64,000 nucleotides of DNA, from the sequence record NC_027364.1. The stretch is one strand, 5' to 3'. The notes below the pieces were generated by a model. It was given only the letters and a program-made list of their open reading frames with translations. It was not told where the DNA came from and made no database searches. Positions 8,438 to 63,703 of this stretch are shown here, piece by piece; the stretch's first letter is position 1; each line of letters opens with the position of its first letter. Made by a program: the position numbers and the translations under genes.

Positions 8438-8466
8438 ATTATATCATATTTTTATAAGTTGTCCCA
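8438..8466 (-). promoter_or_regulatory. TGGGAC-N17-TATAAT promoter
   Basis: Minus strand TGGGAC aacttataaaaatatga TATAAT. Confidence 0.7.
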
Positions 8467-8471
8467 CTTAT

Positions 8472-8500
8472 AAAAGAAGAGAACGGAATTTTCCGTTCTC
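8472..8500 (-). terminator. Terminator after the VWA gene
   Basis: gagaacgg/ccgttctc stem plus T-rich tail on the minus strand. Confidence 0.65.
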
Positions 8501-8512
8501 ATTATTTAGTAC

Positions 8513-9937
8513 TTAACTACGTTGACGCTTTTTATCAGCTTCATATTCGTAGTGTACAGTCTCACCAAATGGTGCAACTTTATTTGGGTTACTGTGAATC
8601 ACGAACAGTGTTTTACAGTAGTTTGGATCACCCCATGACTGCCACGGTTCACCATCAGTAAACATTACAAGCTGTTTAGGCTTGTAGTTGTCGTTCTTCA
8701 TATGAACCCATACTGCTTCAAAGTCAGTACCACCACCACCTTTTACTGGATATTCCAGAATCTTACGTTCTTCGCCAGTTTTGTAATCCTTTACAGTATA
8801 AACTTCAGTATCAAAAGTCATGATACGAATCTTAAACTGTTTGAATTGTTTAGTGATGCCAAGAACTTCACTAATGAAATCACGAAGCATATCTTCAGAA
8901 ATAGACCCAGAAGCATCTAGTGCAATCGCAATATCAATATCATCATCTGGTTTCATCCCTGGGTAAATTGGATTACCATAGAATGAGCCATTAGAACCAA
9001 AACCTGCACCCCAAGAACGACGATTCGGATTTTGATATGTTGCATCAGACTTCAACCAACTACGAAGTGTACGTTGAAGTTTTGAACGCCAGTCAATCTT
9101 TGGTTCTTTAAAGTTGTTAATCATACGAGCGATTTCTGCTGGTGTACCACCTGCACGAGCAGCATTCATCATTGCTGTTTTGAAATCATCCATGTAATCA
9201 CGTTTTTGCTGTTCACTTGAACCACCCTCTTGACCTTCTTGTGGAACGTCATGCTGGTCAATGGTAGTACCTTTTGGTTTACCCTTACCATCTTTAATAT
9301 CGCCAAAAGTACCGCGATTTTTACCTTCACCTTCACCGCCGCCACTTTGTGGTTGACCTTCACCTTCACCATCTTCTTTTTGTTCTTCTTCTTCAAGAAG
9401 AATGTAAATCTCTTCTGCGGTCATGCCTTCATATTTTTTATCATACAACCATGAACTTTGGATTTTCCCAATTTTCTCACGAACGATGATTTGGTTAATG
9501 GCATAATCCGCTGCACGGTTATAACGTTGTGGATCACGCATACCACGACGAAGGAAGTGATCGTAAGCACAGTGTAGAATTTCATGACAAATTACAGCAA
9601 CAAGGTTTTCATCAGTCAAACCTTCAGTCATTTCTTTTAATTGTTCGTCTGTAACTTCAGGGTGCTTTTCACGAATAGCTTCTTCATATTCTTTCTTTTT
9701 AGATGGGTCTTGAATGCCCATTACAAATTCTACGTTGTAGAATAGATGTTTACCATCCACTGCTAGAGTACGACACCATGTATTATTAGGAACTGGACGT
9801 AAACGTGAAGCGAGTACACCAAAGAATGGTGCAGTTAACATCAAAGATGTACGAGCCAGAACCAGACGTTCTTGACATTCTTTCTGGAGTGCCGGAGATA
9901 CTTCATTGAATCTTGAAGTAGATTTGTTATCTGACAT
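8513..9937 (-). CDS. DUF2201-type protein: HEXXH metallopeptidase-like domain plus C-terminal VWA domain
   Basis: CHEILH zinc motif; ALDASGS MIDAS, GGGGTDF, MFTDG. Confidence 0.85.
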   Translation of the reverse strand: MSDNKSTSRFNEVSPALQKECQERLVLARTSLMLTAPFFGVLASRLRPVPNNTWCRTLAVDGKHLFYNVEFVMGIQDPSKKKEYEEAIREKHPEVTDEQLKEMTEGLTDENLVAVICHEILHCAYDHFLRRGMRDPQRYNRAADYAINQIIVREKIGKIQSSWLYDKKYEGMTAEEIYILLEEEEQKEDGEGEGQPQSGGGEGEGKNRGTFGDIKDGKGKPKGTTIDQHDVPQEGQEGGSSEQQKRDYMDDFKTAMMNAARAGGTPAEIARMINNFKEPKIDWRSKLQRTLRSWLKSDATYQNPNRRSWGAGFGSNGSFYGNPIYPGMKPDDDIDIAIALDASGSISEDMLRDFISEVLGITKQFKQFKIRIMTFDTEVYTVKDYKTGEERKILEYPVKGGGGTDFEAVWVHMKNDNYKPKQLVMFTDGEPWQSWGDPNYCKTLFVIHSNPNKVAPFGETVHYEYEADKKRQRS

Positions 9938-10011
9938 GTATATTTCCTCGTTTAGTTAAGATAAAAGAAGGATACCATTAGGCATCCTTCTTGTCAACAA
10001 CTCTTTGTTAA

Positions 10012-11337
10012 TTAGCCAAGAGAGCGTGCTTTACGTACAAGATCAGAGTACTTAGCGATGAAATCTTTAAACGCTGGTACATCTTTAATGGAAATCGCAA
10101 CCTTATGAAGCGTGATGGTACGAATTGCCAGTACTGCCAGTTCTGCTTGAGTTGCAGAGAAGTTATGGTCTAGGAAGGTGATGAAGTTGTTACACAGTTT
10201 ACCCCATTCTTCCACTGGTAGACGTTGTTCTTGCTTCTCATTGAACAGGTCGATAATTTTATAAACCAAGTTCAGAGTGATAAAGTAGTTCGCAGAAATA
10301 TCCAGCGTTGCGTCGATTTCTTTGATTTCACCAGACAGAATAGACATAGTATCTGGTAATTTAGCAACGTTCTCAACGTACTCAATGTATTCAGTTGCAA
10401 CACCTTCACCAACACGACCAGCAATCATTGCACGGAACACTTCTTTATCAATTGTCTTAGTTTTCTTGAGATCTTCGTAGCGTGCTACTGCTTCCCATGA
10501 ACGTGGAGAAGTACCACCACTGTGAGAAGGATCTTGTGGACTAAGTGTGTTAAAGTACTTAGAACCAGTGTTGTTGATGAACGCAACAGTTGCTGGGTTC
10601 AAACGTTTTGCAATCGCATAATCGTTAATCCAATCTTGATGATAAGGAATCATCTCAATGTGAGTCATACGGTCACGCAGTGGTGTAGCAAGAGAGAAAG
10701 TTACACCGCCATCAGTTTCACGGTTACCTGCTGCAAGAATCAGTGCAGTCTTAGGTAGCTTCATCTCACCAACACAACGGTCGAGGATTAGCTGATAAGA
10801 CGCTGCCTGAACAATAGGCATTGCAGAGTTAATTTCGTCAAACAGAATAACACCTTTCCAATCTTCGGACAATTTCAGAACTTTAGGTGCAGCCCATACT
10901 ACCGCAGTTTCAGCTACATAATCTTTTGCTTCGGCAAGCTCAGATTCTTTCAGAAGAGAACCGTCAGTTTTACGGAAAAGCTTCTCTGGTACTGGAATAC
11001 CGCGAAGGTCACTTGGTTCGATTTGAGACAAACGGAAATCGATAAAGTTAGTATCTTGGTCGATTAGTTTTGCTTCAAATGCAGCCAGTTCACGGCGTAG
11101 CTGATCAGCATTTTCAGGGTCAGCTTCGATTTGTTGTTTCATGAACTCGATTTTAGCTACGTTATCTTTACGCAGTGGGTAATTTTCATCAGCGTATTGA
11201 CGAGCGATTGCAGACTTACCGATACCTGGGCTACCCCAAATCATCAGGCTATCTTGAATCATGTCAGCTAGTGCCATTGCTTCTTTAGCTTTCTTTGGAG
11301 TCAGTTTAACGTTCAGGATATCGTTTTGAGTAGTCAT
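10012..11337 (-). CDS. MoxR-like AAA+ ATPase
   Basis: Walker A GSPGIGKS, Walker B VILFDE, AAGNR, LRDR, SPRSW. Confidence 0.88.
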   Translation of the reverse strand: MTTQNDILNVKLTPKKAKEAMALADMIQDSLMIWGSPGIGKSAIARQYADENYPLRKDNVAKIEFMKQQIEADPENADQLRRELAAFEAKLIDQDTNFIDFRLSQIEPSDLRGIPVPEKLFRKTDGSLLKESELAEAKDYVAETAVVWAAPKVLKLSEDWKGVILFDEINSAMPIVQAASYQLILDRCVGEMKLPKTALILAAGNRETDGGVTFSLATPLRDRMTHIEMIPYHQDWINDYAIAKRLNPATVAFINNTGSKYFNTLSPQDPSHSGGTSPRSWEAVARYEDLKKTKTIDKEVFRAMIAGRVGEGVATEYIEYVENVAKLPDTMSILSGEIKEIDATLDISANYFITLNLVYKIIDLFNEKQEQRLPVEEWGKLCNNFITFLDHNFSATQAELAVLAIRTITLHKVAISIKDVPAFKDFIAKYSDLVRKARSLG

Positions 11338-11378
11338 GTATATATTTCCTTTTGTTGGATAAAATCGTTTAAGTTTCT

Positions 11379-11407
11379 ATTATAGCCAATCCGTGGGCAA
11401 AAGTAAA
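11379..11407 (-). promoter_or_regulatory. Sigma70-type early promoter
   Basis: TTTACT-N17-TATAAT. Confidence 0.6.
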
Positions 11408-11506
11408 GGAACTGTGTTAAAATAATTTAACTTATCAGTTCCTTTGTTACTTCATGAATCATCCGTGTGTTTAAAAGGTAAATCTCTTTGCTGTCTTGAT
11501 GTGAAC

Positions 11507-11534
11507 ATTATATCACATCGTTTCAACTTGTCAA
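11507..11534 (-). promoter_or_regulatory. Sigma70-type early promoter
   Basis: TTGACA-N16-TATAAT with TG extension. Confidence 0.7.
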
Positions 11535-11599
11535 TCACTTTTTTTCTTTTTTTTCAAACTCACATCTTGTGTCGCTTGAAAACTTTATGTCTGATGCTT

Positions 11600-11627
11600 A
11601 TTGTATCACATCATTCTATCTTGTCAA
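11600..11627 (-). promoter_or_regulatory. Sigma70-type early promoter
   Basis: TTGACA-N16-TACAAT with TG extension. Confidence 0.65.
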
Positions 11628-11650
11628 CATTTATTTTTAATTCATTTTTC

Positions 11651-12031
11651 TTACATATGAATAGAAAATAACTGTTTAAAATCATCACAACACAATGTTA
11701 ATTCAGTTATTATCATTGCATCTGTCAGATATATGTACTGACCTTCAACATAATAAGGTGAAGTACATATTCTGTCAAGTGATGTAAACATTATAGAACT
11801 TTTAAATTCTCTTTGCAAGGGGATTTTGGTAAATTCATAAAGATTATTTTCTTTACAAATTCCATACCCAAACTTGCTAAGACGTAAACCACCGCCAGTT
11901 CTGAAATTTTCAAAAATTGACATCAGAAGCATACGGTCTGTTATTTCTGAATCTGATTCATGTACTTCCCTAACTTTGGAAAGTACATTATTTTGATATT
12001 CAGTACTGTTATGTGATGGTTCTGGAAACAT
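11651..12031 (-). CDS. Hypothetical protein
   Basis: 126-aa ORF in operon orientation. Confidence 0.7.
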   Translation of the reverse strand: MFPEPSHNSTEYQNNVLSKVREVHESDSEITDRMLLMSIFENFRTGGGLRLSKFGYGICKENNLYEFTKIPLQREFKSSIMFTSLDRICTSPYYVEGQYIYLTDAMIITELTLCCDDFKQLFSIHM

Positions 12032-12034
12032 ATA

Positions 12035-12430
12035 TTAGTCTCCAACAAAACCTTGACGTGCAGCATAAGATGGTGCACCAGGCTCATTATAGTGTTGTAC
12101 GCCTTCTTTGTCAATTGATGGTCCCATACCTTCAGTTCCAAAACAACCTGCAATGGCTTCCAACACTTCTTCATCAGCAACTTCAGTACTTTCATCATTA
12201 TATCGAATGTCAGACAAAATGTCACAGGCTTTTTGTAGTTTATCTACAATTTCTTTTTGGTCTTCACCAGATTTAATCTTATCAACAATATCAATAAGAC
12301 ATTTGGTAATATCCTTAAGAACATCAACTGCTACAACATCGGATTCAACTTCAACTGAAAAACTTTCGTCTTCATCTCTTCCGGTAATTTCGTCTAACGC
12401 TTCAACTAGTTCACGATAATTATATTGCAT
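12035..12430 (-). CDS. Acidic hypothetical protein (putative head-internal)
   Basis: 131 aa, D/E rich. Confidence 0.7.
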   Translation of the reverse strand: MQYNYRELVEALDEITGRDEDESFSVEVESDVVAVDVLKDITKCLIDIVDKIKSGEDQKEIVDKLQKACDILSDIRYNDESTEVADEEVLEAIAGCFGTEGMGPSIDKEGVQHYNEPGAPSYAARQGFVGD

Positions 12431-12431
12431 A

Positions 12432-13412
12432 TTATTTGTCTCCTAAAAATTTCTTGTATTTTTCTTGGAGACTTTCAAAAATATCTTCTACTTCTTCATC
12501 AGAATCATCTTCCAAGTCAATGTTACCTTCAGGTGAATCATCTTCTTCACTTTCATTAACATTTAGTGGGTTATCTCCTAATGCAGTGCCTGGGAATTTT
12601 GGTTCAAATTTATGAACACGATTTTCGTTCCCTTCATTATCATAATACTCAGGTTCTGGACGATTGTCAAGATCTTCATCTACAACACGTCTCCAATAAA
12701 ATTGATTGCCTTTTGCAATTACAACAAAATGGTCACCTTCAACACCATTAGTCTTTAGTTGACCATCACGAACGGCATCAGCTTCTGTTTCATATGGACC
12801 ATAATCAGTACTGTTAGATGGTTCTTCATCTTCAGAGATACTTAGATCTGGTAGAAATTGGGTATCTTTCATTTCTTTATCGGTAGCAGGATTACCCTCT
12901 ACTGAAAAATCTTCGTCTTCTTCTTCGTTAATACCAGCAAGAGATAGCATACGACTAAAATCGAATTCTTCTTCAATAATTTCTTCTTCTTCCTCATCGT
13001 CTTCTTCAACTGATTCTAGTTGAGGTTGACCACTAAGGTCAAGAGAAAAATCTTCTTCACCTTCTACACCTGGTTCTGAAAATTCAGCATCCATACTAAC
13101 TTCATCTGTGTCAGCACCAAAATCACCAACATCAGCGGAAAGATCATCAACTGCCGCTGCTAGTGGGTCTTCAACTGAAGTTTCAATTCCACCAATTTCT
13201 TCTTCAGCACCAATAGAATCGAGATCTAGTGGAGCAATAGGTGGAAGAGATGGAGTCATAGACCCCATAGATGGTACTGGAGCAGCAACTACTGGGTCTT
13301 GACGTTCAGCTTGACCAGCAAGAGCTAACATACGTGATAGAGTTTCCAAATCATCAGATTCTAAACCTGCGATATCGATTTTAACTTGTGCTTCATTAAT
13401 TTTTTTAGCCAT
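12432..13412 (-). CDS. Highly acidic protein, putative prohead core/scaffold-like
   Basis: Very D/E rich, repeated SRMLxLAG motif, several (I/L)xE sites. Confidence 0.5.
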   Translation of the reverse strand: MAKKINEAQVKIDIAGLESDDLETLSRMLALAGQAERQDPVVAAPVPSMGSMTPSLPPIAPLDLDSIGAEEEIGGIETSVEDPLAAAVDDLSADVGDFGADTDEVSMDAEFSEPGVEGEEDFSLDLSGQPQLESVEEDDEEEEEIIEEEFDFSRMLSLAGINEEEDEDFSVEGNPATDKEMKDTQFLPDLSISEDEEPSNSTDYGPYETEADAVRDGQLKTNGVEGDHFVVIAKGNQFYWRRVVDEDLDNRPEPEYYDNEGNENRVHKFEPKFPGTALGDNPLNVNESEEDDSPEGNIDLEDDSDEEVEDIFESLQEKYKKFLGDK

Positions 13413-13434
13413 TTTAAATAAATCCTTTTAGTTA

Positions 13435-14952
13435 TCAATCATTATTATTTAATGATTTTAAAATTTGCACTGTTTCATCCTTTTTACCTGAAAGTAAAAT
13501 GTCAGCAGCAAGTAGAGAAACCTCATCACCACGAGTTAGTAGTACTGTGATTTTTTTAGCATAAGGTGACTCTTTAATTTTAGAAGCTAATGATTGTACA
13601 TCATCACCAGCAATTGTTTCAGATTTAGTTTCTGGTTCAGAAACTTCGTCTGGTTTTTGTTCAGATTCTGGTTCTTTCTTAGGTTCTTCTTTTGATTGAA
13701 TTTGCTCAGTACCAGAGTCTACTTCAGGTGTTTCATCACTTTTAACTTCTTTATCTTGTTCATATTTGGCAAGTAATTTAGCAGCAGTTGCTTTTGGTAT
13801 AAACTTACCATCAGCACTAATGAATCTGTCACCACCAACATACGAATATTCTTTGCCTTGTTTGGATTTAACTTTTGTACCGATTTTCATAGCACCGGAA
13901 TTGTTATGACGGAAAATATCACGCTGTGCTGCTCGTTCAACACTTTTAGAAGCACTTGTGTTAAGTTGCTTTTTACTTTCGATATCATACCACAAGTTAT
14001 TTTTCTTAGCGTATGTTTTTCCTTTAGAAGAAGTCATTCTATAACCGTCAGGAACAGTAATGCTTTCAAATTCTTCAATTTCTTCATCTGCTTCATTAAT
14101 TGATTCTTTAGTTGCAAATACTGGCTGTTTAGCAGGCTGTGAAGCTTGTTGTGGCTTTTCACCTGAACCAAAACGTTGCTCACTATGTTCTTGTTCACCC
14201 GTTAATGTTGGAAAATCACTTGGGTTATTCTTAACAAATTGCTGATATGCATTAATAATTGCATGTGCATTTTGTTCTGGAATTACTACATTACCATCAT
14301 TATCACAAAATTCTTTACCATTCCACTCACAACGTGTATTGCCTTGTACTAAGGTTGATTTGATTGGAATTAGTTTATTTTTAGAAGCTAACTGACGAGC
14401 AATACGCATACCTTCATCTGATAGTTTACGGGTCATTGCTGGATCAACTGCTCGGCCTGATTTCATATCAACAAAACGGTGATTCTTTGGAACAAATTTA
14501 AAACCACTTACTTCCATACCTGCTGGAATTGATATATCATCAGCATATGGTGGAAGAATGTAAAATTTTAATGCATTCCATTCTTTTTGTAGTGTTTCTT
14601 TAGAAACATTATATACTCGATGATCATCTGCCATTAATTCAGTGATGAATTCACTTTCAGTTAATAGAATTCCATCTTTTGAATTGAAACGGTTTTCACC
14701 AATAAATGTACACTCTTTACCTTCAACAATATATTTGTTACCAATCTTATATTCATTTGAAGCTAGATTGTGCTCGACAATCTGTTGTCGAGCACTTGCG
14801 TACATGGATGGGTATTTTCTAGGGTCTACCATTAACATATTATTGTCATTGAACCAGAATCCTTCAAGAAATACATATTTTGCACCAGTATGTGACGTAT
14901 ATACATATCCATTAGGAACTGTGGTAGTTTCAGTACTGAAAAAATTATCCAT
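13435..14952 (-). CDS. Hypothetical virion protein with three internal repeats of about 85 aa
   Basis: VPNGYVYTS..., IPAGMEVSG... and VPDGYRMTS... modules, each ending F.s.DG. Confidence 0.6.
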   Translation of the reverse strand: MDNFFSTETTTVPNGYVYTSHTGAKYVFLEGFWFNDNNMLMVDPRKYPSMYASARQQIVEHNLASNEYKIGNKYIVEGKECTFIGENRFNSKDGILLTESEFITELMADDHRVYNVSKETLQKEWNALKFYILPPYADDISIPAGMEVSGFKFVPKNHRFVDMKSGRAVDPAMTRKLSDEGMRIARQLASKNKLIPIKSTLVQGNTRCEWNGKEFCDNDGNVVIPEQNAHAIINAYQQFVKNNPSDFPTLTGEQEHSEQRFGSGEKPQQASQPAKQPVFATKESINEADEEIEEFESITVPDGYRMTSSKGKTYAKKNNLWYDIESKKQLNTSASKSVERAAQRDIFRHNNSGAMKIGTKVKSKQGKEYSYVGGDRFISADGKFIPKATAAKLLAKYEQDKEVKSDETPEVDSGTEQIQSKEEPKKEPESEQKPDEVSEPETKSETIAGDDVQSLASKIKESPYAKKITVLLTRGDEVSLLAADILLSGKKDETVQILKSLNNND

Positions 14953-14965
14953 GTGTTGATTCTCC

Positions 14966-15508: not shown

Positions 15509-15511
15509 GTG

Positions 15512-25668: not shown

Positions 25669-26145
25669 TTATTTTAGAATGTATAAGTGTTTTTCTGCAT
25701 TGACCAGTCGGTGATCAATGATTTCTTTGATAACGTTCCAGTTACCGCCGCCCAAATCGGCTCCAATTTTCGGGAAGTGTACATGAACATCTCGATCAAC
25801 TTTACAAAAATAATTTAGATGTTTGAACACATCGTCGATTGCATCATAACTGACATATTTAGCACCGTCATTACCGTACATTTTTTGGGTAATACAGTTT
25901 GCAATAATCAAATTATCGTTAATTGCTGAATATGCAATTTGTCCAATTCTAAGAAATCCCATTTCCTTTTCATATGCTTTATAATCATCATATGCCATTG
26001 GGTAACGATTTCTTAGCTCTTTTGCAAAACCTGAACCCATTTTACCCTGTGCGTTACAACCATGAGCAATTATATGTATTGCTGTTTTATCATCTGTAAC
26101 AGTACTGAATAATTCAAACAGATTACCTCGGTGTTCATGAATCAT
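25669..26145 (-). CDS. Macrodomain protein (TARG1/Poa1/DarG-like ADP-ribose hydrolase)
   Basis: GNLF, IAHGCNAQGKMGSGFA, ANCITQ, FPKIGADLGGGNW. Confidence 0.88.
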   Translation of the reverse strand: MIHEHRGNLFELFSTVTDDKTAIHIIAHGCNAQGKMGSGFAKELRNRYPMAYDDYKAYEKEMGFLRIGQIAYSAINDNLIIANCITQKMYGNDGAKYVSYDAIDDVFKHLNYFCKVDRDVHVHFPKIGADLGGGNWNVIKEIIDHRLVNAEKHLYILK

Positions 26146-26735: not shown

Positions 26736-26974
26736 CGACCTTCTTTAAGACCTTCAATAAACCCAGTACAACCACCTGGTACATAAATGTCATTTACGAA
26801 AATTTGAGGAACTTGACGAACTGGTTCACCACAAATTTCAGACAGTTTTGAACCATCGATACCTTCAGCAACAATATCTACAAACTCCATTTCAAATTTA
26901 TTTTGTTCACATACAGCTTTTGCAGTGTCGCAAAATTTACAACCAGTCTTGCGACCATAAATTTTAACTTTCAT
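26726..26974 (-). CDS. Glutaredoxin (T4 NrdC-like)
   Basis: GCKFC active site, VPQIFV, GG. Confidence 0.92.
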   Translation of the reverse strand: MKVKIYGRKTGCKFCDTAKAVCEQNKFEMEFVDIVAEGIDGSKLSEICGEPVRQVPQIFVNDIYVPGGCTGFIEGLKEGRWN

Positions 26975-26975
26975 G

Positions 26976-27449: not shown

Positions 27450-27478
27450 ATTATATCAGTTATTGGTTTTTTGTCCCA
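27450..27478 (-). promoter_or_regulatory. TGGGAC-N17-TATAAT promoter
   Basis: TGGGAC aaaaaaccaataactga TATAAT. Confidence 0.7.
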
Positions 27479-30543: not shown

Positions 30544-31470
30544 TTAGAGTGAACTTAACAACAAATCTGCTCGGTTTGTAACTTGACGATACCATAAGGA
30601 ATTCATAATTTCTTTTTTAAATTTCTTAGGGTTATCATTTTTCACACTTTTCCAAAGCTTATTAAACGTAGCCAATTTATCGACGCCCATTGTATAGGAC
30701 ATTTCATAAAGAATACGTTGTTGTTCTTTGGTCAAATTTACTGCTTCTTTTTTCTGCATCAATAATAAAAAGTCATCATATGTTCTTTTCATATCTTGCA
30801 TCAAAAGTTTGTTGGCTTGAGCTTTGGTAATACCGTTTCTGTACTTAATCGCATCAGATTCTTTTCTACCCAAATAATGCCCATAACCTATTGTATAATT
30901 ACCTTTCATGTCCTTGTAAGGATGAAATTTAGAATTGTGGAAAGGAACTCCGACTTTCCCACCAAGTAAACGGCGTTTGTTCTTGGACTGAAATTCAATT
31001 GAACCTTCAGCTTCTTTGATGTGATTGACAATTTCTGGATCATTATAATCAAACAGTACAGTCACATCTGGTAACAATACGTTCTTCAAATCCTCTTTTG
31101 TTGGGATAAAGATACCCTGAGAAGTATGAAGAGTAGCATTTAAATTGATATTTTTCAACAAAATAACATACTCTTCAAGTTGTACATTTTTAGGTTTAAA
31201 CTTTTTAGCAATAGAATAATAACTATCACCAGGTTGAACCGTATAATGCTTCTCGCCGCGTGGAACATCCTTTGATATTTCTACCTTTGGTAATTCCTGC
31301 TTTTGAATTTGCGTAACTTGTGGTTTTAAATTGTGTACCTGACTTTCGTCCGATGATGATACACGATCATTTTGAGAAAAACCATAAAATCCAATCGCAG
31401 CGACAAGTACTGTGCAAACTAGAACACCATAAGTAGTCTTAGTTTTCAGTGCTTTTTTCGCTTGTTTCAA
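30544..31470 (-). CDS. Membrane-anchored LysM plus T4-lysozyme-like (GH24) muramidase
   Basis: AGGAGG SD before TTG at 31470; N-terminal TM helix; LysM HYTVQPGDSYYSIAKKF; EAEG...YKDMKGNYTIGYGH; SLWYRQVTNRA. Confidence 0.85.
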   Translation of the reverse strand: MKQAKKALKTKTTYGVLVCTVLVAAIGFYGFSQNDRVSSSDESQVHNLKPQVTQIQKQELPKVEISKDVPRGEKHYTVQPGDSYYSIAKKFKPKNVQLEEYVILLKNINLNATLHTSQGIFIPTKEDLKNVLLPDVTVLFDYNDPEIVNHIKEAEGSIEFQSKNKRRLLGGKVGVPFHNSKFHPYKDMKGNYTIGYGHYLGRKESDAIKYRNGITKAQANKLLMQDMKRTYDDFLLLMQKKEAVNLTKEQQRILYEMSYTMGVDKLATFNKLWKSVKNDNPKKFKKEIMNSLWYRQVTNRADLLLSSL

Positions 31471-32408: not shown

Positions 32409-32765
32409 TCATTTCTTGTGTAAAGGTTCATCACTTTCATAATAAATTGTATCATTATTTCGCTCTATAGTAAAGCTCTTTTGACACAACTCTTCAGCTA
32501 AACCCTTTGCATAGTTTAATACATCTCGGTTGAGATATACTTCTTCTTTTGGAAAGCGTGGGTACTGAATAATACGAGCACACATCCCACTTTCAAGACC
32601 GCCAGTGTAGATATATTCACAGGGAATTAATTGTACACAAAATCCAAGCTTGAATGCAAACTTTCGTGTGTACTCTCTTGCTGTTTGGATATCACCAGCA
32701 ATATGAATATTCCAGTACTGCGTCTCCACTGTACCTTTGTCGATATATTTCATACTCATCTCCAA
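32409..32765 (-). CDS. Conserved phage hypothetical protein
   Basis: YIYTGGLESG...IIQYPRFP motif. Confidence 0.7.
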   Translation of the reverse strand: MEMSMKYIDKGTVETQYWNIHIAGDIQTAREYTRKFAFKLGFCVQLIPCEYIYTGGLESGMCARIIQYPRFPKEEVYLNRDVLNYAKGLAEELCQKSFTIERNNDTIYYESDEPLHKK

Positions 32766-32782
32766 TTATAGCATAAAAAATC

Positions 32783-33172
32783 CTACTTGCCCAAATCTTC
32801 TATAATTCTTTTTATAGTATCATTGTTTTCCAGACATAAAGTACTGAAATTTCTACCTGTTTTTTCATTGAGTTCATTAATCTCAAGCATAAGATAACCA
32901 TAAGTGATATCTTGAACCCTACTTCGTTTTACCCTTGAGTACAGTCTGATGGGTACAGATACACGAGTATTCAAAAAGAATTCTGATAAATCATAACGAT
33001 ATACCAGGTATTCATTCTTGTAACGTTTACGACTGTACGATTCTAAACACTGTGGGAAACGTCTATCAAAAATACTGGTCCTTAGCTGAAGAATCATCGG
33101 ATCTAACTTATGTGAGTAATATTTTTTAATTATTTTGTCAAAACGCTTAATGTGACGTTTCTTCCATCTCAT
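32783..33172 (-). CDS. Hypothetical protein
   Basis: 129-aa ORF. Confidence 0.65.
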   Translation of the reverse strand: MRWKKRHIKRFDKIIKKYYSHKLDPMILQLRTSIFDRRFPQCLESYSRKRYKNEYLVYRYDLSEFFLNTRVSVPIRLYSRVKRSRVQDITYGYLMLEINELNEKTGRNFSTLCLENNDTIKRIIEDLGK

Positions 33173-36984: not shown

Positions 36985-37425
36985 TTATTGTAAAACTTTA
37001 AGTTTGTAAAGTGTTCCTTCAACAAAACTCATAATATCTTCTAATGTGTTTACACTGCCGTAATCACCTGATTCTTCAAGCATATCATGAATTGCTCTAC
37101 ATTGCTCAACATATTCTTCAAGAATTGGTACACAATCTTCAATTGGTGTAAAACGATAACTATTACCAGTTCCAACTTGTAAAGCACCACGATTATTCAT
37201 GATACCTTCAACAAATGCGTCTACATATTCTGGTAATTCTTTATATAGTTCATCTAATTGTAAATGCTTTGTATAAAAATGACATTGTAAGTGCCAGTTA
37301 TGTGCAGCAGAACTTAAAAACAAACTATTTTCAATAAAAGTTAATAGTACTTCATCATATGAATTATCTTCTTCAGTACTTCCGATAAAGTCCATTACGT
37401 GTCGTAAATCATTAATATCTTCCAT
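36985..37425 (-). CDS. Dps/ferritin-like protein
   Basis: AAHNWHLQCHFYTKHLQLDELY......VDAFVE matches the Dps AHW....F...H..LD.......D...E ferroxidase pattern. Confidence 0.75.
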   Translation of the reverse strand: MEDINDLRHVMDFIGSTEEDNSYDEVLLTFIENSLFLSSAAHNWHLQCHFYTKHLQLDELYKELPEYVDAFVEGIMNNRGALQVGTGNSYRFTPIEDCVPILEEYVEQCRAIHDMLEESGDYGSVNTLEDIMSFVEGTLYKLKVLQ

Positions 37426-37886: not shown

Positions 37887-38540
37887 TCACTTCGTTCTCT
37901 CGTAACTCAAGAAGTCACTGCGTTTACTTCGTAAACTAGTTCCTTCTGAAAATGATAATGTACTTTAAAAACTTGACGGGATTTGTTGAGGACTATTACA
38001 TCCCCCCGCAGGGGAATGAAGGTAATAAAAAAGAGACAATTAAGTCTCTCTTGACGATGATGGCATCGGATATTATCGAATTGCGAATTTCTCAAATTTT
38101 GGACGGATCTTTCTTGTACCAAAATTTAGAGAGCGAAAGCGGGTTGCTCGGTTTCTCTCTATCGCAGTCATATGCAACGGTCGCTGGTCTTTTCATCAAC
38201 AGCACTCAGTACTAACTCTATTCGATCAAAGTAGTACTTGTTCTCAAATTTTGGACGCAACTTTCTTGTAAAAATTGCGTCCGCTATTCTTGAACTCCCT
38301 TAGCAAATCTGGTAAGGTGCGAACCTTATACATCTATCTAGGAACTCTCTGTATGCTTATCGGAGTTCTTTATACAGCCGTGTCGCCGTGATTCGTGGTC
38401 TTACATCGTGTTTGTTTGAATGCCAGTACTCTAACAGGTTTCTTCTGCTGTTCGCTACAACGGTAAAGCTCATCTATCCTTTACATTTTCAAGAGAAGTA
38501 GGTTCTCAGTGTCCATTTTTCAATGTCCGTTGTCATTTTC
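37887..38540. other. Hairpin-rich non-coding region (candidate replication origin or large structured RNA)
   Basis: About 650 bp with no credible gene, more than 10 inverted repeats, GNRA-type loops and a 30-bp near-identical direct repeat (38089, 38241). Confidence 0.6.
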
Positions 38541-38547
38541 TATATAC

Positions 38548-38576
38548 ATTATATCATTGGAACATATAATGTCCCA
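38548..38576 (-). promoter_or_regulatory. TGGGAC-N17-TATAAT promoter pointing into the non-coding region
   Basis: TGGGAC attatatgttccaatga TATAAT. Confidence 0.7.
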
Positions 38577-47974: not shown

Positions 47975-48003
47975 ATTATACACATAAAAGAAAAGCCCGT
48001 CAA
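47975..48003 (-). promoter_or_regulatory. Near-consensus sigma70 promoter overlapping a terminator
   Basis: TTGACG-N17-TATAAT with TG extension. Confidence 0.8.
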
Positions 48004-54095: not shown

Positions 54096-54103
54096 TATTT
54101 ATA
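54096..54103 (-). promoter_or_regulatory. T4-type late promoter TATAAATA
   Basis: Exact motif 35 bp upstream of the structural gene start; related (C/A)TAAATA motifs precede other structural genes (about 19010, 22865, 24720, 44675). Confidence 0.65.
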
Positions 54104-57574: not shown

Positions 57575-57585
57575 TTCTTTTTACC

Positions 57586-58164: not shown

Positions 58165-58174
58165 TTTTAATCTC

Positions 58175-58444: not shown

Positions 58445-58761
58445 ATTTCACATGGTTTAGCCGGAACAGGAATTCCATCTTTACTTATCCGTGCAATCAG
58501 TAAAGTATGAACATCAGCACGAGCAGCCAGTAAACATGAAATTTCAGCATGAAGAAACTCACCTTGCGGTCGCCCAGCACGAATGGCGAAACCCTTCTGT
58601 ACTGGGTGAGTCTGTGTATAAGAATTTGTGCGAGTTGCCAGTACTCTACCTTTTTTATCAAGTGCACGAGCAATAACACGATACCGTTTGTAATTTCCTA
58701 CTTGTTCAATAGGTGGCATCTGGCGTAATTCTTCGATTAGTTTCTCCAATTTACTATTCAT
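58393..58761 (-). CDS. Zinc-dependent cytidine/dCMP deaminase-fold protein
   Basis: LHAE ... PCEIC, N-terminal TNS...THP. Confidence 0.8.
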   Translation of the reverse strand: MNSKLEKLIEELRQMPPIEQVGNYKRYRVIARALDKKGRVLATRTNSYTQTHPVQKGFAIRAGRPQGEFLHAEISCLLAARADVHTLLIARISKDGIPVPAKPCEICSLAIKEYGVKEIIHT

Positions 58762-59384
58762 AAGTCTAAGTCTATACCCTTTTCAATAGATTTCTCTAGA
58801 ACCCAAAGTTTACATTCTTCACTCTCCAAATGTATCTTTGCCTCTTTCTGTTGTTCTATTGTACAAGACTTTATGAATTCACGCAAGGCTTCTATTGTAT
58901 TTTTTAAATTTTTTATATCATCGAAGATTTTTTCTTTGGTTTCTTCATCGATTACACATGAACTCCAACTGTGTCGTTCCTCCCAAACAGTTTTAGTGGG
59001 ATTAAAAATTGATGGAGTAGATTTGAATGCATGGATCTTATTAAATGTGTTATCTGCTTCTTGTTGGGTGTAATCACCATATGTGTTTAGCACATTTTTG
59101 TATAATTTATCAATCGCCTCTTCATACGTATCACCACCACAATCCAATTGATAATCATGTGCTTGTACCCATTCGTCGTCTTGCTCAATATACATTGGTG
59201 AAAGAAATTCTACCCAAAATTGAGTCTTTGTATTCAATGCTTTAAAATCTTCAATTCGATTTGTCATTGGACACACATCATGAGGTTCTATATCAATCCT
59301 AGCTGGAACCATGTCTTTGTTTATGAATTTAGGATGACCCAAAATCCACCAGTACTTTTCCGATGTAGTCATAGTAATCTCCAA
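58758..59384 (-). CDS. Hypothetical protein
   Basis: 208-aa ORF. Confidence 0.7.
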   Translation of the reverse strand: MEITMTTSEKYWWILGHPKFINKDMVPARIDIEPHDVCPMTNRIEDFKALNTKTQFWVEFLSPMYIEQDDEWVQAHDYQLDCGGDTYEEAIDKLYKNVLNTYGDYTQQEADNTFNKIHAFKSTPSIFNPTKTVWEERHSWSSCVIDEETKEKIFDDIKNLKNTIEALREFIKSCTIEQQKEAKIHLESEECKLWVLEKSIEKGIDLDL

Positions 59385-59417
59385 TTAAAAAGTACTGCCA
59401 TTATGACAGTACTGATA

Positions 59418-59777
59418 TTAAATGTAACGTTTCTTTTTATAATCATACCCTACTGCTTTGTAAAAGTCAAACAAAGAAGCATGTTCAAATGTAGGTAATA
59501 GGTCATATGGATGCTGATAGTTCGCAATACCAACAATAGCCAGCATTGATTCAGCAGTTCTTACGTTCTCACTATCCCATTCATCCAAACGCCACAGTGA
59601 GCAAAGTACCTCTCGTTCATGTTTCTTACCCAGAAAGAATCCAGCTTCACGGTCACGAAATGCACCTACACTGATAGTACTTTTGTACCAGTCTTTTTCA
59701 CCATATAATGGCATACGGATAATATGTTTTTCTTTAGCTTCTCCAAAGCGATGAAGAAATGCTACATAATCACTCAT
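59418..59777 (-). CDS. Hypothetical protein
   Basis: 119-aa ORF. Confidence 0.7.
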   Translation of the reverse strand: MSDYVAFLHRFGEAKEKHIIRMPLYGEKDWYKSTISVGAFRDREAGFFLGKKHEREVLCSLWRLDEWDSENVRTAESMLAIVGIANYQHPYDLLPTFEHASLFDFYKAVGYDYKKKRYI

Positions 59778-59944
59778 AATTTATAACCCATTACAGGTTT
59801 GGTATGATCCGGTTCGTAAGACTTTTCAGTACTGAACCCTCTGAAATTACCACGACCTGGATTCGGGCAAGCCATCCCTTGTACTGAATGCTTACCCTTA
59901 TCTTTGCCACAATTTTTACATTTGTAGTCAATTACTTCTTTCAT
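59774..59944 (-). CDS. Small Cys/His protein (56 aa, not in the ORF track)
   Basis: MKEVIDYKCKNCGKDKGKHSVQGMACP...; ATGA overlaps on both ends. Confidence 0.7.
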   Translation of the reverse strand: MKEVIDYKCKNCGKDKGKHSVQGMACPNPGRGNFRGFSTEKSYEPDHTKPVMGYKL

Positions 59945-60189
59945 TGTGCATCCTTCGGAACAGTATTAAGACGTTTGCGATTCACAATCTTCCTGCACAT
60001 GAGATTAAGATCTTGCCCATGACGCATAGTATGACATGCGTATAGTGTTCCTTGGTGATTTAGTTTTGTTAAACCTTGACGGATGATTTCAGCATCCATC
60101 TCATCAACTTTAGGAGCACAACCACAGAGAATAATGGATACAAATATTGTTAATGTAATGAATATATTTTTCATGATATTTTTTCTCAT
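59941..60189 (-). CDS. Putative lipoprotein
   Basis: Hydrophobic stretch ending LCGC. Confidence 0.6.
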   Translation of the reverse strand: MRKNIMKNIFITLTIFVSIILCGCAPKVDEMDAEIIRQGLTKLNHQGTLYACHTMRHGQDLNLMCRKIVNRKRLNTVPKDAQ

Positions 60190-60566
60190 TTAGTAAAACA
60201 CGAATTATTACTGATAAGTTCATCAAGTACGTTTTGTACTTCGATAGAATTAATATCAACTTTGTAATAATTATAGTTTTTAACTCTAAAATGTTCTTTT
60301 GATATATCAACTTTAAATTCAATAATATCAAGATTACCAATAAAATCAGACTTATCAGTTCTTAAATCCAAAATACCTAATTCCGGTTTTTGTGGTTTAC
60401 ATAAAATCAAACCAAATTTATTTTCTTCAAATGCCTGATTAAACATATCATAATAATCACTAATAACAAATCTAATATTATCAGTGCTTAACTTTCCTGA
60501 TTTTCCTTTTTTATAAACAGAAACAATGTTTAGTTCAAAGGTTTTACCAAAGCGTGTGATTTTCAT
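60186..60566 (-). CDS. Hypothetical protein
   Basis: 126-aa ORF. Confidence 0.7.
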   Translation of the reverse strand: MKITRFGKTFELNIVSVYKKGKSGKLSTDNIRFVISDYYDMFNQAFEENKFGLILCKPQKPELGILDLRTDKSDFIGNLDIIEFKVDISKEHFRVKNYNYYKVDINSIEVQNVLDELISNNSCFTK

Positions 60567-61534
60567 TTTGGGCTATAACCACTTTTAATTTTGGAAATTA
60601 CTTTCTTCTCGAAGAACTTACGTGCTTCTTCAATAGTTTCGAATTCTTCACCATCAGTAGTACTGGTTTTACCAATAGCACCGTACTCAATAATTACTTC
60701 ACACACTGGAGCATTCAATTCAATATTATAGAATTTGTTTGAAGAACCGTGAACATATTCCAAATGTACATTATCAGGAATGTTCTGTACATAATCATAG
60801 TTCTTGAAGATAATATCAATCATATTTTCTTCGCCGCGATCAGGAAATAGTTCAGTATTATTCAGTACTAAACGCTGTGCAGCACGGAACATATCAAAAT
60901 ATTGTTCGCCTTTTTTCAGTTCTTTTGTATCAGAACAGAAATGACCATAATATTCTACATAATCATTCCAAGGATAAATTCCTTCATCAGCAGTTTCAAA
61001 AACGTAAGTTTCATCTTGTGGAACTTTAAAACCACGAGTTTTTGGATGAGAAATTAAGCACAGTGAAATATTATGACCGATATCTGAATCATCAGTAATA
61101 CTACCACCAACCATATGAACAACATTTTTAATACGTTCAAAATCTACATCTTCAATTTCATGATACATTAAATGTTCTTCAATATTACTTACTAGTAATG
61201 AATTACCATTTCCGGCATCGAATTCAAAAATGAAAAGTTCTACACAATCTTCTTCTTTCATTTCAATAGTATCACTGAGTTTAATATACTCATTTTTTAA
61301 TTGTTCAATATTTTCATGAGAACCAAAACTATAACGTGAACTGATATAACTACTACCGTCCAACCATCCCATATCCCAAGGTTCTTCTGACATGTATTCT
61401 GAGCTATAGAAATGAGTCAAATCATCTCTCTGAGTACAAACCGTAAGAGAGCGAACATTATTAAGACCTTGAACTTCAAGATTCAGTACTGTAGTATTGC
61501 CAATTTTTTGTTCAGAAATAATTTTAGTTTTCAT
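60563..61534 (-). CDS. Protein with C-terminal WGR domain
   Basis: HLEYVHGSSNKFY.IEL....V...YGAIG......EF.T.EEA...F.K.V.SK.K.GY. Confidence 0.75.
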   Translation of the reverse strand: MKTKIISEQKIGNTTVLNLEVQGLNNVRSLTVCTQRDDLTHFYSSEYMSEEPWDMGWLDGSSYISSRYSFGSHENIEQLKNEYIKLSDTIEMKEEDCVELFIFEFDAGNGNSLLVSNIEEHLMYHEIEDVDFERIKNVVHMVGGSITDDSDIGHNISLCLISHPKTRGFKVPQDETYVFETADEGIYPWNDYVEYYGHFCSDTKELKKGEQYFDMFRAAQRLVLNNTELFPDRGEENMIDIIFKNYDYVQNIPDNVHLEYVHGSSNKFYNIELNAPVCEVIIEYGAIGKTSTTDGEEFETIEEARKFFEKKVISKIKSGYSPK

Positions 61535-61543
61535 TTAAAATAC

Positions 61544-61648
61544 CTATTGAATTGATTTACGCCATTTGGCTAGTTTAACATTCATGTAAGTAAGGAACTC
61601 ACGTTCCATCTCTTCTGAACTCATATTATCGCATTGCAAAGCGAACAT
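61544..61648 (-). CDS. 34-aa ORF duplicating the C-terminus of the upstream gene
   Basis: MFALQCDNMSSEEMEREFLT versus LFKTQYEGHSAEEVEREFIT. Confidence 0.45.
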   Translation of the reverse strand: MFALQCDNMSSEEMEREFLTYMNVKLAKWRKSIQ

Positions 61649-61665
61649 GTCAAGTGCACATCATC

Positions 61666-62313
61666 CTACTTTTTCGATTGGAACAATGCAATCTGTACGC
61701 GTGTAATGAACTCACGCTCTACTTCTTCAGCACTGTGTCCTTCATATTGTGTCTTGAAAAGTTCCATTGCTTTTAGTGCCATCTGTACAGAAATGTCTGT
61801 AATACTTTCAGTACTGGTAGTCTCAAATACATTTCTGATGGATAGTTCACCATCATCAGCATGTTCTTGTTGAACCGTGTTGTTTTGTTCATCAATGTAA
61901 CGTAAAGCTTTGTACTCTGCTTTTGTTAGATTTTCATACCAACGTGGGTGGTGGAACAAATCATGCATTGTAACTTTTGCTGCTTCCATGAGAAGTAATA
62001 GCTCTTCATTTCTGCGAATATGTTTTTCTTCACCTTTATGATTTTTGTAAGTATATGCACAACGCATAATGGCTAATCGAACTTCACCTGCTTTGGTGAT
62101 AGTGTATGAATGTATTGCATTATCATAATCACTTTCCCATTTCTGACCAGCATATTCGTACCAAAGTTCATTAGTTTCCCATTTAATGAAATCAAATTCT
62201 AACAAACTGTCAATCAACTTAGCCAAATTACCACTGTACTCACGGCTAATGATATTGAAACCACCATTGTACTTTGCAAGGTACAGAATCTTTTCTTGTG
62301 TTACATTTTTCAT
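61666..62313 (-). CDS. Hypothetical protein
   Basis: 215-aa ORF. Confidence 0.7.
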   Translation of the reverse strand: MKNVTQEKILYLAKYNGGFNIISREYSGNLAKLIDSLLEFDFIKWETNELWYEYAGQKWESDYDNAIHSYTITKAGEVRLAIMRCAYTYKNHKGEEKHIRRNEELLLLMEAAKVTMHDLFHHPRWYENLTKAEYKALRYIDEQNNTVQQEHADDGELSIRNVFETTSTESITDISVQMALKAMELFKTQYEGHSAEEVEREFITRVQIALFQSKK

Positions 62314-62651
62314 TACATGTAATCCTTGATGTATTTTAGCAGTTTAGATTTCTCTTCGGTACTTAATGATTTCTTGTTCATTAAGTGTTTCATTTCTTGA
62401 CGTTCAATTTCTTCACATCTTTTAGATTCAGCTTCAATTCGTGTATTATATTCTTCGTCAGTTTCTTCTCTGGTCCAAATTACATTGTATCCATGAAAAC
62501 CGCCGTAACCACCGTCGGGTGAAAGACTAATGGGACCGTTATATTCAGCACGATACTTATTAAGAGTGTCAATAAAGGTATCAATGCCACACGGTTCAAT
62601 TTCAATATAACCAATCACTACAGTAACGTCAATTTTGTTCATAAAGTTCAC
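62313..62651 (-). CDS. Hypothetical protein
   Basis: REETDEEY..RI motif. Confidence 0.7.
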   Translation of the reverse strand: MNFMNKIDVTVVIGYIEIEPCGIDTFIDTLNKYRAEYNGPISLSPDGGYGGFHGYNVIWTREETDEEYNTRIEAESKRCEEIERQEMKHLMNKKSLSTEEKSKLLKYIKDYM

Positions 62652-62669
62652 CTATAAAATTAGGGAGCA

Positions 62670-63227
62670 TTAGCTCCCTTTGTATTGATGTTTACGTTTA
62701 GTACTGTATTTCCAGCCAGTACTGTGTCTTGTTCTGATATCGTCCCAATACGATGGTAATGAACGCATCTTACGTCTTCCACGTATTTCAGGTTCCCCCT
62801 CATCCTTCAGTACTGCACAAGCCATACGACGCTCTTGCTGAGTCTTAGGACGCTTGTATCGGGAGTGGTTATGTTTGTACATATACGAACGCTTATGTCG
62901 CCATTCCTTATCACGAGCTTTACGTTTATGTTCCCAGTACTCATTATAGAGTATCATGTATTCACCCATAAGTAAATCAGGAGATACAAGTAATCCTTTT
63001 TCAGTACAAAGATAATAACCTACGAACTTTTCTGGATACATTTCGTAATAGAAACGGTTCTTCCAAAATGTTTCACGATTCTTTTTGTTGAATTCAGCTA
63101 AATCGAATTTCATCTTACTGTGGAAACGGTCTATACCGTCATGTTCCGCAATGTACTCTAACAGATTATCAATAATCTCAACTTTACCAGAATCGTGATA
63201 CAACGTAAATGTTTGGTCAAAAAACAT
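62670..63227 (-). CDS. Hypothetical protein with basic C-terminus
   Basis: RPKTQQERR...RGRR...LPSYWDD...WK...KRKHQYK. Confidence 0.75.
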   Translation of the reverse strand: MFFDQTFTLYHDSGKVEIIDNLLEYIAEHDGIDRFHSKMKFDLAEFNKKNRETFWKNRFYYEMYPEKFVGYYLCTEKGLLVSPDLLMGEYMILYNEYWEHKRKARDKEWRHKRSYMYKHNHSRYKRPKTQQERRMACAVLKDEGEPEIRGRRKMRSLPSYWDDIRTRHSTGWKYSTKRKHQYKGS

Positions 63228-63453
63228 ATGAAATCTCCTTTAAGTTAAAATAACCTAATGGAAAGTCATTCTTCCTTTAATACATGTTCTCATGATTTGT
63301 TCCTTTTGTCAAGATATAGATATAAAAAATCCCTGCCAAAAGACAGGGACGAAAAACTGAAATAACACATGGAGTTCTTTTTAATTTAATAAAAAGTATT
63401 ATTATTCTTATAAAAGTATTTATTAAGAACTCCACAATATGGCTTCAAATGAA

Positions 63454-63642
63454 TCAAAAACCTTTCTGAGCTACTAGTTCGCGGTACTGTGCACGAGTTA
63501 GTACACCTTGTTTGCGTAGAGCTTGTAGACCGGATAGGGTTTCACTCTTACGTTGTTCGTACATACGTTGTTCTTTAGATTGAATAACTTTCTCTTTCTT
63601 AACTTTTGCTACTGGTTCTTGTTTCTTAGGTTGTTTAGCCAT
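63454..63642 (-). CDS. Small basic protein
   Basis: 62 aa, K/R rich, GGAG SD. Confidence 0.7.
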   Translation of the reverse strand: MAKQPKKQEPVAKVKKEKVIQSKEQRMYEQRKSETLSGLQALRKQGVLTRAQYRELVAQKGF

Positions 63643-63673
63643 TTTATATCTCCTTCTGTATTATGATAACAAC

Positions 63674-63703
63674 ATTATATCATGTATGGGACATTATGTC
63701 CCA
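63674..63703 (-). promoter_or_regulatory. TGGGAC-N18-TATAAT promoter embedded in the gtatgggac/gtcccatac hairpin
   Basis: TGGGAC ataatgtcccatacatga TATAAT. Confidence 0.55.

Follow-up and report, generated by a model that had tools for sequence, protein, structure and literature searches.

The window analysed here is a whole stretch of 64,000 nucleotides (nt) that matches, at 100% identity, bases 1-64000 of the genome of Escherichia phage PBECO4 (NC_027364.1, 348,113 bp), a giant coliphage and Rak2-like jumbo myovirus of the genus Asteriusvirus. Four elements on its minus strand, each in a short gap between minus-strand genes, carry a TGGGACA box where the -35 hexamer of a promoter should be and the trinucleotide TGA directly before TATAAT (4/4). 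They belong to what we call class M, a second, phage-specific promoter class that, as far as sequence comparison can tell, is almost certainly real. Most likely it is a middle-type class read by a sigma factor of the phage itself, gp356.

The class-M promoters of PBECO4

A sequence-only reading of the window had proposed the four elements, with a spacer of 17 nt at the 8438, 27450 and 38548 sites and of one base more, 18, at the 63674 site, and all four are present exactly so (Table 1). The window holds four matches to TGGGAC-N16-19-TATAAT, each on the minus strand, where dinucleotide-preserving shuffles (n=100) predict 0.06 occurrences and 0/100 shuffles reach four. By itself the word TGGGAC is no more frequent than chance predicts (14 copies, 15 expected), so it is the coupling to a -10 element that carries the signal. 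When scored with a two-block matrix built from 22 seed sites, with a cut-off of at least 18, the four sites fall between 25.8 and 28.5 and no other window site reaches 18. The promoter at 8438 lies between the HNH endonuclease gene gp009 and gp008, and heads gp008, gp007 and the DprA-like and thymidylate synthase genes. A fifth candidate, the TGGGCA variant at 32765, does exist, as proposed, but it is weak, with a matrix score of 13.7 and a box score of 1.7. Its surroundings are 97% identical in the related phage fEgEco12, which makes conservation there uninformative. The annotated ATG of gp044 stands only 6 nt past the -10 of this variant (window 32753-32765); use of that -10 would yield a gp044 mRNA that has no leader or else starts at the second ATG.

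Table 1. Positions of promoters, repeats and RNA genes (window coordinates unless marked as genome or given with a piece label)
Feature	Position	Strand	Details
Class-M promoter	8438..8466	minus	TGGGACA box, 13-nt spacer, TGATATAAT; matrix score 28.3
Class-M promoter	27450..27478	minus	Between tRNA nucleotidyltransferase gene gp033 and nudix hydrolase gene gp032; score 28.5
Class-M promoter	38548..38576	minus	Heads a stretch free of open reading frames (non-coding RNA gene); score 25.8; conserved in fEgEco12
Class-M promoter	63674..63703	minus	Between PhoH-like gene gp091 and gp090; spacer 18; score 26.3
Doubtful variant, TGGGCA-N17-TGCTATAAT	32765..32793	minus	Good extended -10, poor box
Sigma70-type promoter, TTGACA-N16-TATAAT	11507..11534	minus	With TG
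Second sigma70-type promoter	11600-11627
Third sigma70-type promoter (TTGACG)	47975-48002
T4-type late motif TATAAATA	54096..54103	minus	Sole exact copy in the window; gp073 starts 35 nt downstream
Terminator-like hairpin of upstream gene	8471..8508	minus	18-nt arms, 83% complementary, then T-rich run; directly before the 8438 promoter
Perfect 10-nt inverted repeat	8450-8475		Flanks the box; GGGACA forms its 6-nt loop
9-nt inverted pair	38546-38572
9-nt perfect palindrome core, centre 63695	63664-63726		In 31-nt arms, 71% complementary; box in one arm
Non-coding element copy (candidate structured RNA)	37973..38507	minus	About 470 nt; promoter at 38548-38576
Other three non-coding RNA copies	L002:43658-44130; L004:45043-45496; L007:4927-5393
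tRNA-Ser	genome 209109-209198 (L005:9109-9198)
tRNA-Ser	genome 210921-211010 (L005:10921-11010)
tRNA-Gly	genome 212040-212112 (L005:12040-12112)

The annotated record was fetched as seven pieces and joined for the genome-wide scripts. The exact pattern TGGGAC-N17/18-TATAAT is found at 10 sites of the PBECO4 genome, all on the minus strand, and the matrix scan at the same cut-off returned 29 PBECO4 sites. The 29 are all on the minus strand and none is on the plus strand, 0.1 being expected per strand. All of them lie on the strand of the genes, 24 are intergenic and directly upstream of a gene start in the record annotation, and the plus-strand blocks of structural genes are without a class-M site. 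Their consensus consists of an A/T-rich tract, T-G-(G/A)-G-A-C-A-A, about 12 nt and T-G-N-T-A-T-A-A-T. In the strong sites the -10 is always TATAAT or TACAAT, and TG occupies -15/-14 in 16/20.

An unbiased count of the hexamers located 15-19 nt upstream of all 762 TATAAT in the genome gives the same picture, since GGGACA (35-fold) and TGAGAC (29-fold) head the list; the early-type words ACTTGC (28-fold), CTTGCA (23-fold) and TTGACA (20-fold) are also high. The distance from GRGACA to TATAAT is 16 nt at 15 sites and 17 nt at 3, and that from TTGACA is 16, 17 and 18 nt at 15, 11 and 3 sites, respectively. Because both words keep the same register, the box corresponds to the -35 hexamer and has the GACA half in common with it. 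Among NNGAC-N17/18-TATAAT combinations, NN is TT in 34 cases, GG in 13, GA in 7, TG in 7 and AG in 4, every other pair occurring at most once. An extended -10 TG accompanies 11/13 GG, 5/7 GA and 6/7 TG sites (22/27 together) versus only 4/34 TT sites.

These counts, together with the placement of the sites, support the existence of a separate phage-specific class, in addition to the early promoters of sigma70 type and the TATAAATA late motif. The three ordinary TTGACA/TTGACG promoters listed earlier for the window at 11507, 11600 and 47975 all exist. The TTGACA/TTGCA family is stereotyped, with an A-tract, then GTACTTGCA or TTGACA, then GTATAATGTTTTACAT. Early promoters cluster at 125-155 kb, and class M is spread across the replication regions. 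About 30 near-identical early promoters at ~125-153 kb form a repeated array, each being followed by a G-rich ribosome-binding site and a tiny open reading frame; the array at 125-150 kb looks like the early region. As for the late motif, talk of several TATAAATA promoters in the window proved overstated. The motif is strongly avoided, with one exact copy in the window versus 11 expected and 15 in the genome versus ~97 expected from base composition.

Another side observation concerns a composite terminator-promoter unit made of a G+C-rich hairpin (GGGTTGAC-TTCG-GTCAGCCC), a T-run and TG(C/T)TATAAT. In this arrangement the -35 TTGAC lies inside the terminator stem. PBECO4 has four copies, at genome ~174.1, 175.9, 176.8 and 187.1 kb (L004:24090-24130, 25880-25920, 26804-26845 and 37093-37135), and 7t3-like, Yersinia and CBB contigs have the same unit close to the sigma gene.

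The genes downstream of class-M sites speak, from annotation and sequence, for the middle-like role that had been suggested, as they cover replication, nucleotide metabolism, tRNAs and a late sigma factor. Besides the gp008/DprA-like/thymidylate synthase group and the nudix gene gp032, they include the single-stranded DNA-binding protein (SSB) gene gp498, which has a tandem pair of sites, the primase gene gp485, the topoisomerase II gene gp453, the exonuclease gene gp475 and gp513, followed by the DNA polymerase gene gp512. A class-M site precedes the gp55-like late sigma gene gp530, and a weaker TGGGAA site (score 17.5) precedes the RNase H gene gp503. Three phage tRNA genes, for which the fetched RefSeq feature tables have no tRNA entry, start 7, 11 and 12 nt after the end of a class-M-type -10 (tRNA-Ser, tRNA-Ser and tRNA-Gly). 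At such a distance the tRNAs would have almost no 5′ leader, and the sites are where a promoter has to be.

The site at 38548 and three others (94197, 195529 and 305443) head stretches that are free of open reading frames and paralogous to each other. The four copies, of about 470 nt, lie in the window and near 93.7, 195.3 and 305.1 kb of the genome, and are 70-86% identical over 190-510 nt. Their alignment has invariant blocks, insertions and deletions of lengths not divisible by three and a stem that paired changes preserve, and the stretches have no Rfam match at either gathering or E-value thresholds. An nhmmer profile finds 3-5 copies in each of seven Rak2-like genomes (PBECO4, fEgEco12, Salmonella phage 7t3, Erwinia phage Hallingskeid, RaK2, GAP32 and Yersinia phage fHe-Yen9-04, hereafter Yen9-04) and none in PA5oct or in Vibrio phage 2.275.O. 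In all 29 near-full-length copies of these seven genomes, the box of the lineage concerned is present at its usual distance from TATAAT, ~50-80 nt upstream of the conserved core, with TGn before TATAAT in 27/29; the two copies without it are those of phage 7t3 (Sal7t3) at 30808 (TCC) and RaK2 at 6866 (TAA).

Two of the window sites had been said to sit inside inverted repeats. The repeats are present, only that perfect ones of 9-10 nt occur at three of the four sites. Those at 8450-8475 and 63664-63726 are partly kept in fEgEco12, one of them through a paired T:A to C:G change. Genome-wide, arms of at least 8 nt occur at 6/29 class-M sites versus 0.7 in shuffles. Their geometry is variable, with the box in the loop, the box in an arm or the spacer pairing with the -10, and some are terminators of upstream genes. 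Despite their excess, this lack of a shared arrangement led us to reject a common operator.

Lineage-specific boxes in related phages

Eight further whole genomes were compared, namely fEgEco12, 7t3, Hallingskeid, RaK2, GAP32, Yen9-04, PA5oct and Vibrio phage 2.275.O. The last was excluded from the comparison, as it has no TATAAT-anchored class and carries three or four different sigma70-like genes. Between PBECO4 and fEgEco12 the box and the -10 are kept while the spacers have diverged, as seen at the 8438 and 27450 sites; at 63674 the box, the -10 and 7 bp of the palindrome arms are kept. In addition, 24 public sequencing runs were available, all as assembled contigs; those that cross the 27450 promoter come from two wastewater metatranscriptomes and from two further runs of uncertain type, one of these probably DNA, and are uninformative on transcription starts.

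The same hexamer count was repeated in the relatives, with an off-register control for each box. In every sigma-bearing genome, TTGAC promoters are accompanied by a single dominant second class whose spacer lengths peak sharply, and most second-class sites have TGn before TATAAT, with RaK2 the only genome at 12/24. At register, GGGAC/GAGAC number 13+7 in PBECO4, 13+7 in fEgEco12 and 28+4 in 7t3, where the spacer has one extra base. The corresponding words are GGGAT/GAGAT in Hallingskeid (18+5), TGAAC in RaK2 (24, split 12/12 between 17 and 18 nt) and GAAAC/GGAAC in GAP32 (30+5) and Yen9-04 (23+13). Counts of one lineage's box in another are mostly at or near the off-register control, as with GAAAC in PBECO4 (1) and GGGAC in GAP32 (0); the exceptions are GGGAC/GAGAC in Hallingskeid (4+1), GGAAC in PBECO4 (3) and RaK2 (3) and TGAAC in PBECO4 (5). 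The layout of a 7-mer box, 13 nt and TGnTATAAT is common to PBECO4, fEgEco12, Hallingskeid, GAP32 and Yen9-04, and varies in 7t3 and RaK2.

Orthologous promoters make the replacement of one box by another visible. Upstream of the SSB gene, an alignment of six phages has the same tandem promoter pair throughout, with TGGGACA/CGGGACA boxes in PBECO4, fEgEco12 (one copy being CGAGACA) and 7t3, (C/T)TGAACA in RaK2 and TGAAAC(G)/TGAAAT(G) in GAP32 and CBB. The promoters before the late sigma, primase, topoisomerase II, exonuclease and gp513 genes likewise keep the spacing and TGnTATAAT and mostly carry the box of their own lineage. Among the few deviants are the topoisomerase II promoter of Hallingskeid (GAGACA) and the gp513 promoter of fEgEco12 (GGAACA). 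The hosts of the phages with the class are all enterobacteria with essentially the same sigma70 region 4.2. The host sigma factor therefore cannot explain the differences between the boxes, and their reader must be phage-encoded. PA5oct has SSB and gp55 homologues and no second promoter class; a search for a sigma70-type gene in its genome found none, and its promoters guided by RNA sequencing are of the TTGAC/TATAATA type only (PMC7318152). The seven Rak2-like genomes are depleted of TATAAATA by a factor of 5-9, and PA5oct and the Vibrio phage by a factor of ~2.

A class of this kind has been predicted before in GAP32 and CBB. The CBB paper describes a 'second possible promoter' of CBB and GAP32 with a classic -10 and TGAAACG replacing TTGACA, at 18 sites that are mostly before DNA-synthesis genes, one being before a gp55-like sigma gene; its Table S6 gives 29-nt sites of the form TGAAAC(G/A)-N13-TGnTATAAT (PMC5259590, Buttimer 2017). 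The GAP32 'Promoter 1', a divergent RpoD-like promoter, goes back to Abbasifar 2014, as cited in that paper. The PBECO4 sites share with Promoter 1 the 29-nt layout (7-mer box, 13 nt, TGnTATAAT), the tie to DNA-synthesis genes and orthologous positions, both before SSB and before the gp55-like sigma gene (CBB Porf_244, PBECO4 site 310144), and differ in the box, which is TG(G/A)GACA in PBECO4 and TGAAAC(G/A) in GAP32 and CBB. Given the same tandem positions and layout, the PBECO4 class is orthologous to the published one and differs from it in the box, as a lineage variant of an already predicted class. The published class is a MEME prediction in which no reader was assigned, lineages were not compared and Asteriusvirus was not covered. 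Our literature search found no promoter analysis for PBECO4, 121Q, phAPEC6, RaK2 or fEgEco12 and, for this phage group as a whole, no experiments on promoters or the sigma factor.

The phage sigma factor and the reader of the box

The only sigma70-family gene in the PBECO4 genome is gp356 (genome 195592-196557, outside the window). Its product matches Pfam Sigma70_r3 above the cut-off (37.8 bits) and falls just below it for Sigma70_r4 (23.8 bits, cut-off 24.1) and Sigma70_r2 (23.0 bits, cut-off 24); in the genome-wide search Sigma70_r2 reaches 25.4 bits, above the cut-off. Compared with RpoD, SigA and RpoS of the PDB it gives E 5e-17 alone and 3.5e-31 as a family profile, and its top Foldseek matches are sigma factors. 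Orthologues exist in all genomes with the class and evolve fast, with 35-59% identity to gp356, whereas tblastn matches to the PBECO4 SSB are 68-86% identical over the aligned part. An AlphaFold model computed from eleven orthologues has a mean predicted local distance difference test score (pLDDT) of 63, region 4 being at ~75-87, and comprises in region 4 a helix (274-280), a short beta-hairpin (282-290) and a long helix (293-313). In the sigma factor of phage 121Q (L171:10001-10963), which is 99% identical to gp356, a conserved beta-hairpin of 8-10 residues, G-F-x-D-x-x-G-K, occupies the turn of the region 4.2 helix-turn-helix.

In the model, helix 293-313 would be the recognition helix, and by pattern its residues R293, S294, H297 and R298 may be the counterparts of sigma70 R584, E585, R588 and Q589. 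Alignments with sigma70 begin in region 2 and break off at the insertion that follows the first helix of the region 4.2 helix-turn-helix, so the residue mapping of the recognition helix is one that we infer. A PDB search with region 4 alone returned weak matches only, which end before this helix.

Across nine genomes and six further metagenomic contigs, the putative recognition helix and the box change together. Asteriusvirus phages have R-S-S-(I/L)-H-R-K-Y and 7t3-like phages R-T-S-L-H-R-C-Y, both with GGGAC; Hallingskeid has H-S-T-I-H-R-R-Y with GGGAT, RaK2 has R-G-T-L-H-Y-K-F with TGAAC, and GAP32, CBB, Yen9-04 and four metagenomic contigs have K-A-T-L-S-R-R-Y with GAAAC. In other words, H-R goes with GGGA, S-R with GAAA and H-Y with TGAA. 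Furthermore, where the first helix residue is Arg the base at -31 is C, and where it is His the base is T; in sigma70 it is R584 that reads the -31 pair. Overall relatedness of the proteins does not follow this pairing: the sigma factors of 7t3 and Hallingskeid are 44-45% and 41% identical, respectively, to that of GAP32 and 37-38% to that of PBECO4, and though nearer to GAP32 they have HR and GGGA like PBECO4.

In the mechanism that we propose, host RNA polymerase with sigma70 would transcribe the early genes from the TTGACA/TTGCA promoters. The gene gp356 is the last of four neighbours on one strand, the first of which, gp359, is preceded by a TTGACA-type promoter; this promoter, three genes upstream, would drive early expression of gp356. 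The protein would then bind host core polymerase, its diverged region 4.2 helix reading the box at -35 with the -10/TG in the usual register, and would switch on the replication and nucleotide-metabolism operons, three tRNA units, the four non-coding RNA copies and the gp55-like late sigma gene. The late sigma factor would in turn serve the TATAAATA late promoters. We give gp356 as the reader of the class-M box a probability of roughly 65%, and its presumed use of the host core polymerase and the timing go with that role. The earlier suggestion of a modified sigma region 4 thus survives in part: a diverged region 4 is likely, but it would be that of the phage's own sigma factor and not of a remodelled host sigma70.

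Several points weigh against this assignment. The mapping of the helix onto sigma70 depends on a motif pattern and a medium-confidence model, and the co-variation comprises five helix types only, which are not phylogenetically independent. The gp356 residues aligned with those positions of sigma70 regions 2.3-3.0 that contact the -10 and the TG are not conserved: Ser/Thr stand in place of the tryptophan pair of region 2.3, and PBECO4 gp356 has Y and V where sigma70 has H455 and E458. Yet the -10 is canonical and identical across lineages whose region 2.4 differs. A search for a promoter directly before gp356 found none, so that its early expression, too, is something we infer. Finally, GRGACA equals TTGACA at 4/6 positions and TGnTATAAT is the textbook sigma70 extended -10; with such a -35 match and an ideal extended -10, the host holoenzyme may fire class-M promoters alone.

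This last point leads to the explanations in which host sigma70 stays on the promoter. One is an appropriation as in T4, where sigma70 would read the extended -10 and a phage activator, perhaps with an anti-sigma co-factor, would bind the box. In its favour, the -10 and TG are exactly what sigma70 reads and the gp356 residues at the sigma70 -10/TG positions are poorly conserved. An unrecognised activator could also exist, since 83% of the gene products of the related phage phAPEC6 are without known function (PMC7247149), and AsiA has been reported in a subset of related jumbo phages (PMC7824862). Nevertheless, six-frame translations of the whole 348-kb record have no match at E up to 10 to AsiA (PF09010) or to the N-terminal (PF09114) and C-terminal (PF09158) domains of MotA, and the box keeps the -35 register of TTGACA instead of lying at -30. 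Appropriation would moreover leave a complete phage sigma factor without a promoter class, turn its co-variation with the box into a coincidence and not account for PA5oct, which is without both the sigma gene and the class. We consider it unlikely, and the analogy to the MotA/AsiA system of T4 drawn in the sequence-only reading fails on the same grounds: no AsiA or MotA domain was found, the box is in the -35 register and the phage has a sigma factor of its own.

It seems equally improbable that class M consists of plain extended -10 promoters used by host sigma70 all through infection, the box being a site for a phage repressor or timing factor or a remnant of an upstream terminator hairpin. 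Extended -10 promoters need no -35, and the excess of inverted repeats, two of which hold the box of a window site in the loop or arm of a partly conserved palindrome, would fit such a site. But the box is the most enriched word upstream of TATAAT and is conserved while the spacers diverge, and it keeps a fixed distance of 16-17 nt from the -10, the exact -35 register, in seven genomes. The repeats have no common geometry and most sites have none, the box in most promoters is a half-site and not a palindrome, and a repressor leaves the match between box and sigma helix unexplained. That TGGGAC and TATAAT coincide by chance in a genome rich in A+T, in favour of which one might cite that TGGGAC alone is not over-represented, has practically no probability left and is ruled out by the counts (4 versus 0.06 in the window, 29 versus 0.1 genome-wide, all on one strand) and by the joint conservation of box and -10 around diverged spacers.

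Read by gp356, class M would occupy the same slot as the middle promoters of T4, between sigma70 early and gp55 late transcription. Both have a good -10 that often carries TG, and both serve similar kinds of genes, the late sigma gene among them. The MotA box is centred near -30, so the register differs, as do the box sequence and the proteins: PBECO4 lacks MotA/AsiA homologues and encodes a full phage sigma factor, which T4 lacks. Another parallel is offered by the phage-sigma middle promoters of Bacillus phage SPO1 (gp28) and of phiEco32/7-11 (gp36) (PMC8948821, PMC13401047). There, as in the model for PBECO4, an early phase with the host sigma factor is followed by a phage sigma factor that redirects host core polymerase, and the sigma gene is among the early genes. 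PBECO4 differs in that its -10 stays a perfect host-type TATAAT with TG and only the -35 changes, and in that gp356, which combines regions 2, 3 and 4, carries an additional beta-hairpin within the helix-turn-helix of region 4.2. Group IV (extracytoplasmic function, ECF) sigma factors have -35 elements of the GGAAC type, and GG(G/A)AC and G(G/A)AAC resemble this core; the helix R-S-S-I-H-R presumably also resembles the recognition helix of RpoE, which we take as a lead only. Unlike ECF sigma factors, gp356 has region 3 and best matches group 1 and 2 sigma factors, and the TATAAT -10 is not ECF-like.

Implications for Rak2-like jumbo phages

What the comparison adds to the earlier predictions is the lineage-specific pairing of box and helix and the link to the tRNAs and the multi-copy RNA. 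We lean, somewhat beyond an even chance, towards the view that Rak2-like jumbo phages carry natural orthogonal sigma/-35 pairs, in which the helix and all of the ~20-35 promoters of a genome have changed together per genus (GGGAC, GGGAT, TGAAC, GAAAC) while the -10 stayed host-like. One such co-change would be Arg to His at the equivalent of sigma70 R584, paired with C to T at -31. If this is true, these phages would provide a readable natural 'code' for a sigma region 4 with an unusual beta-hairpin insertion, and a phage sigma factor would be the switch for a multi-copy large structured RNA.

For the Asteriusvirus coliphages PBECO4, 121Q and phAPEC6, the analysis gives a testable three-tier map of host sigma70, phage sigma and gp55-like sigma, and several of these coliphages are under study as candidate antibacterial agents. 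It assigns a likely job to a previously unstudied sigma gene and fixes the promoter, and hence the probable timing, of a multi-copy non-coding RNA and of the phage tRNAs. The pairs of box and helix may be mined as orthogonal promoter/sigma parts, and they would constitute a natural experiment on how region 4 reads DNA.

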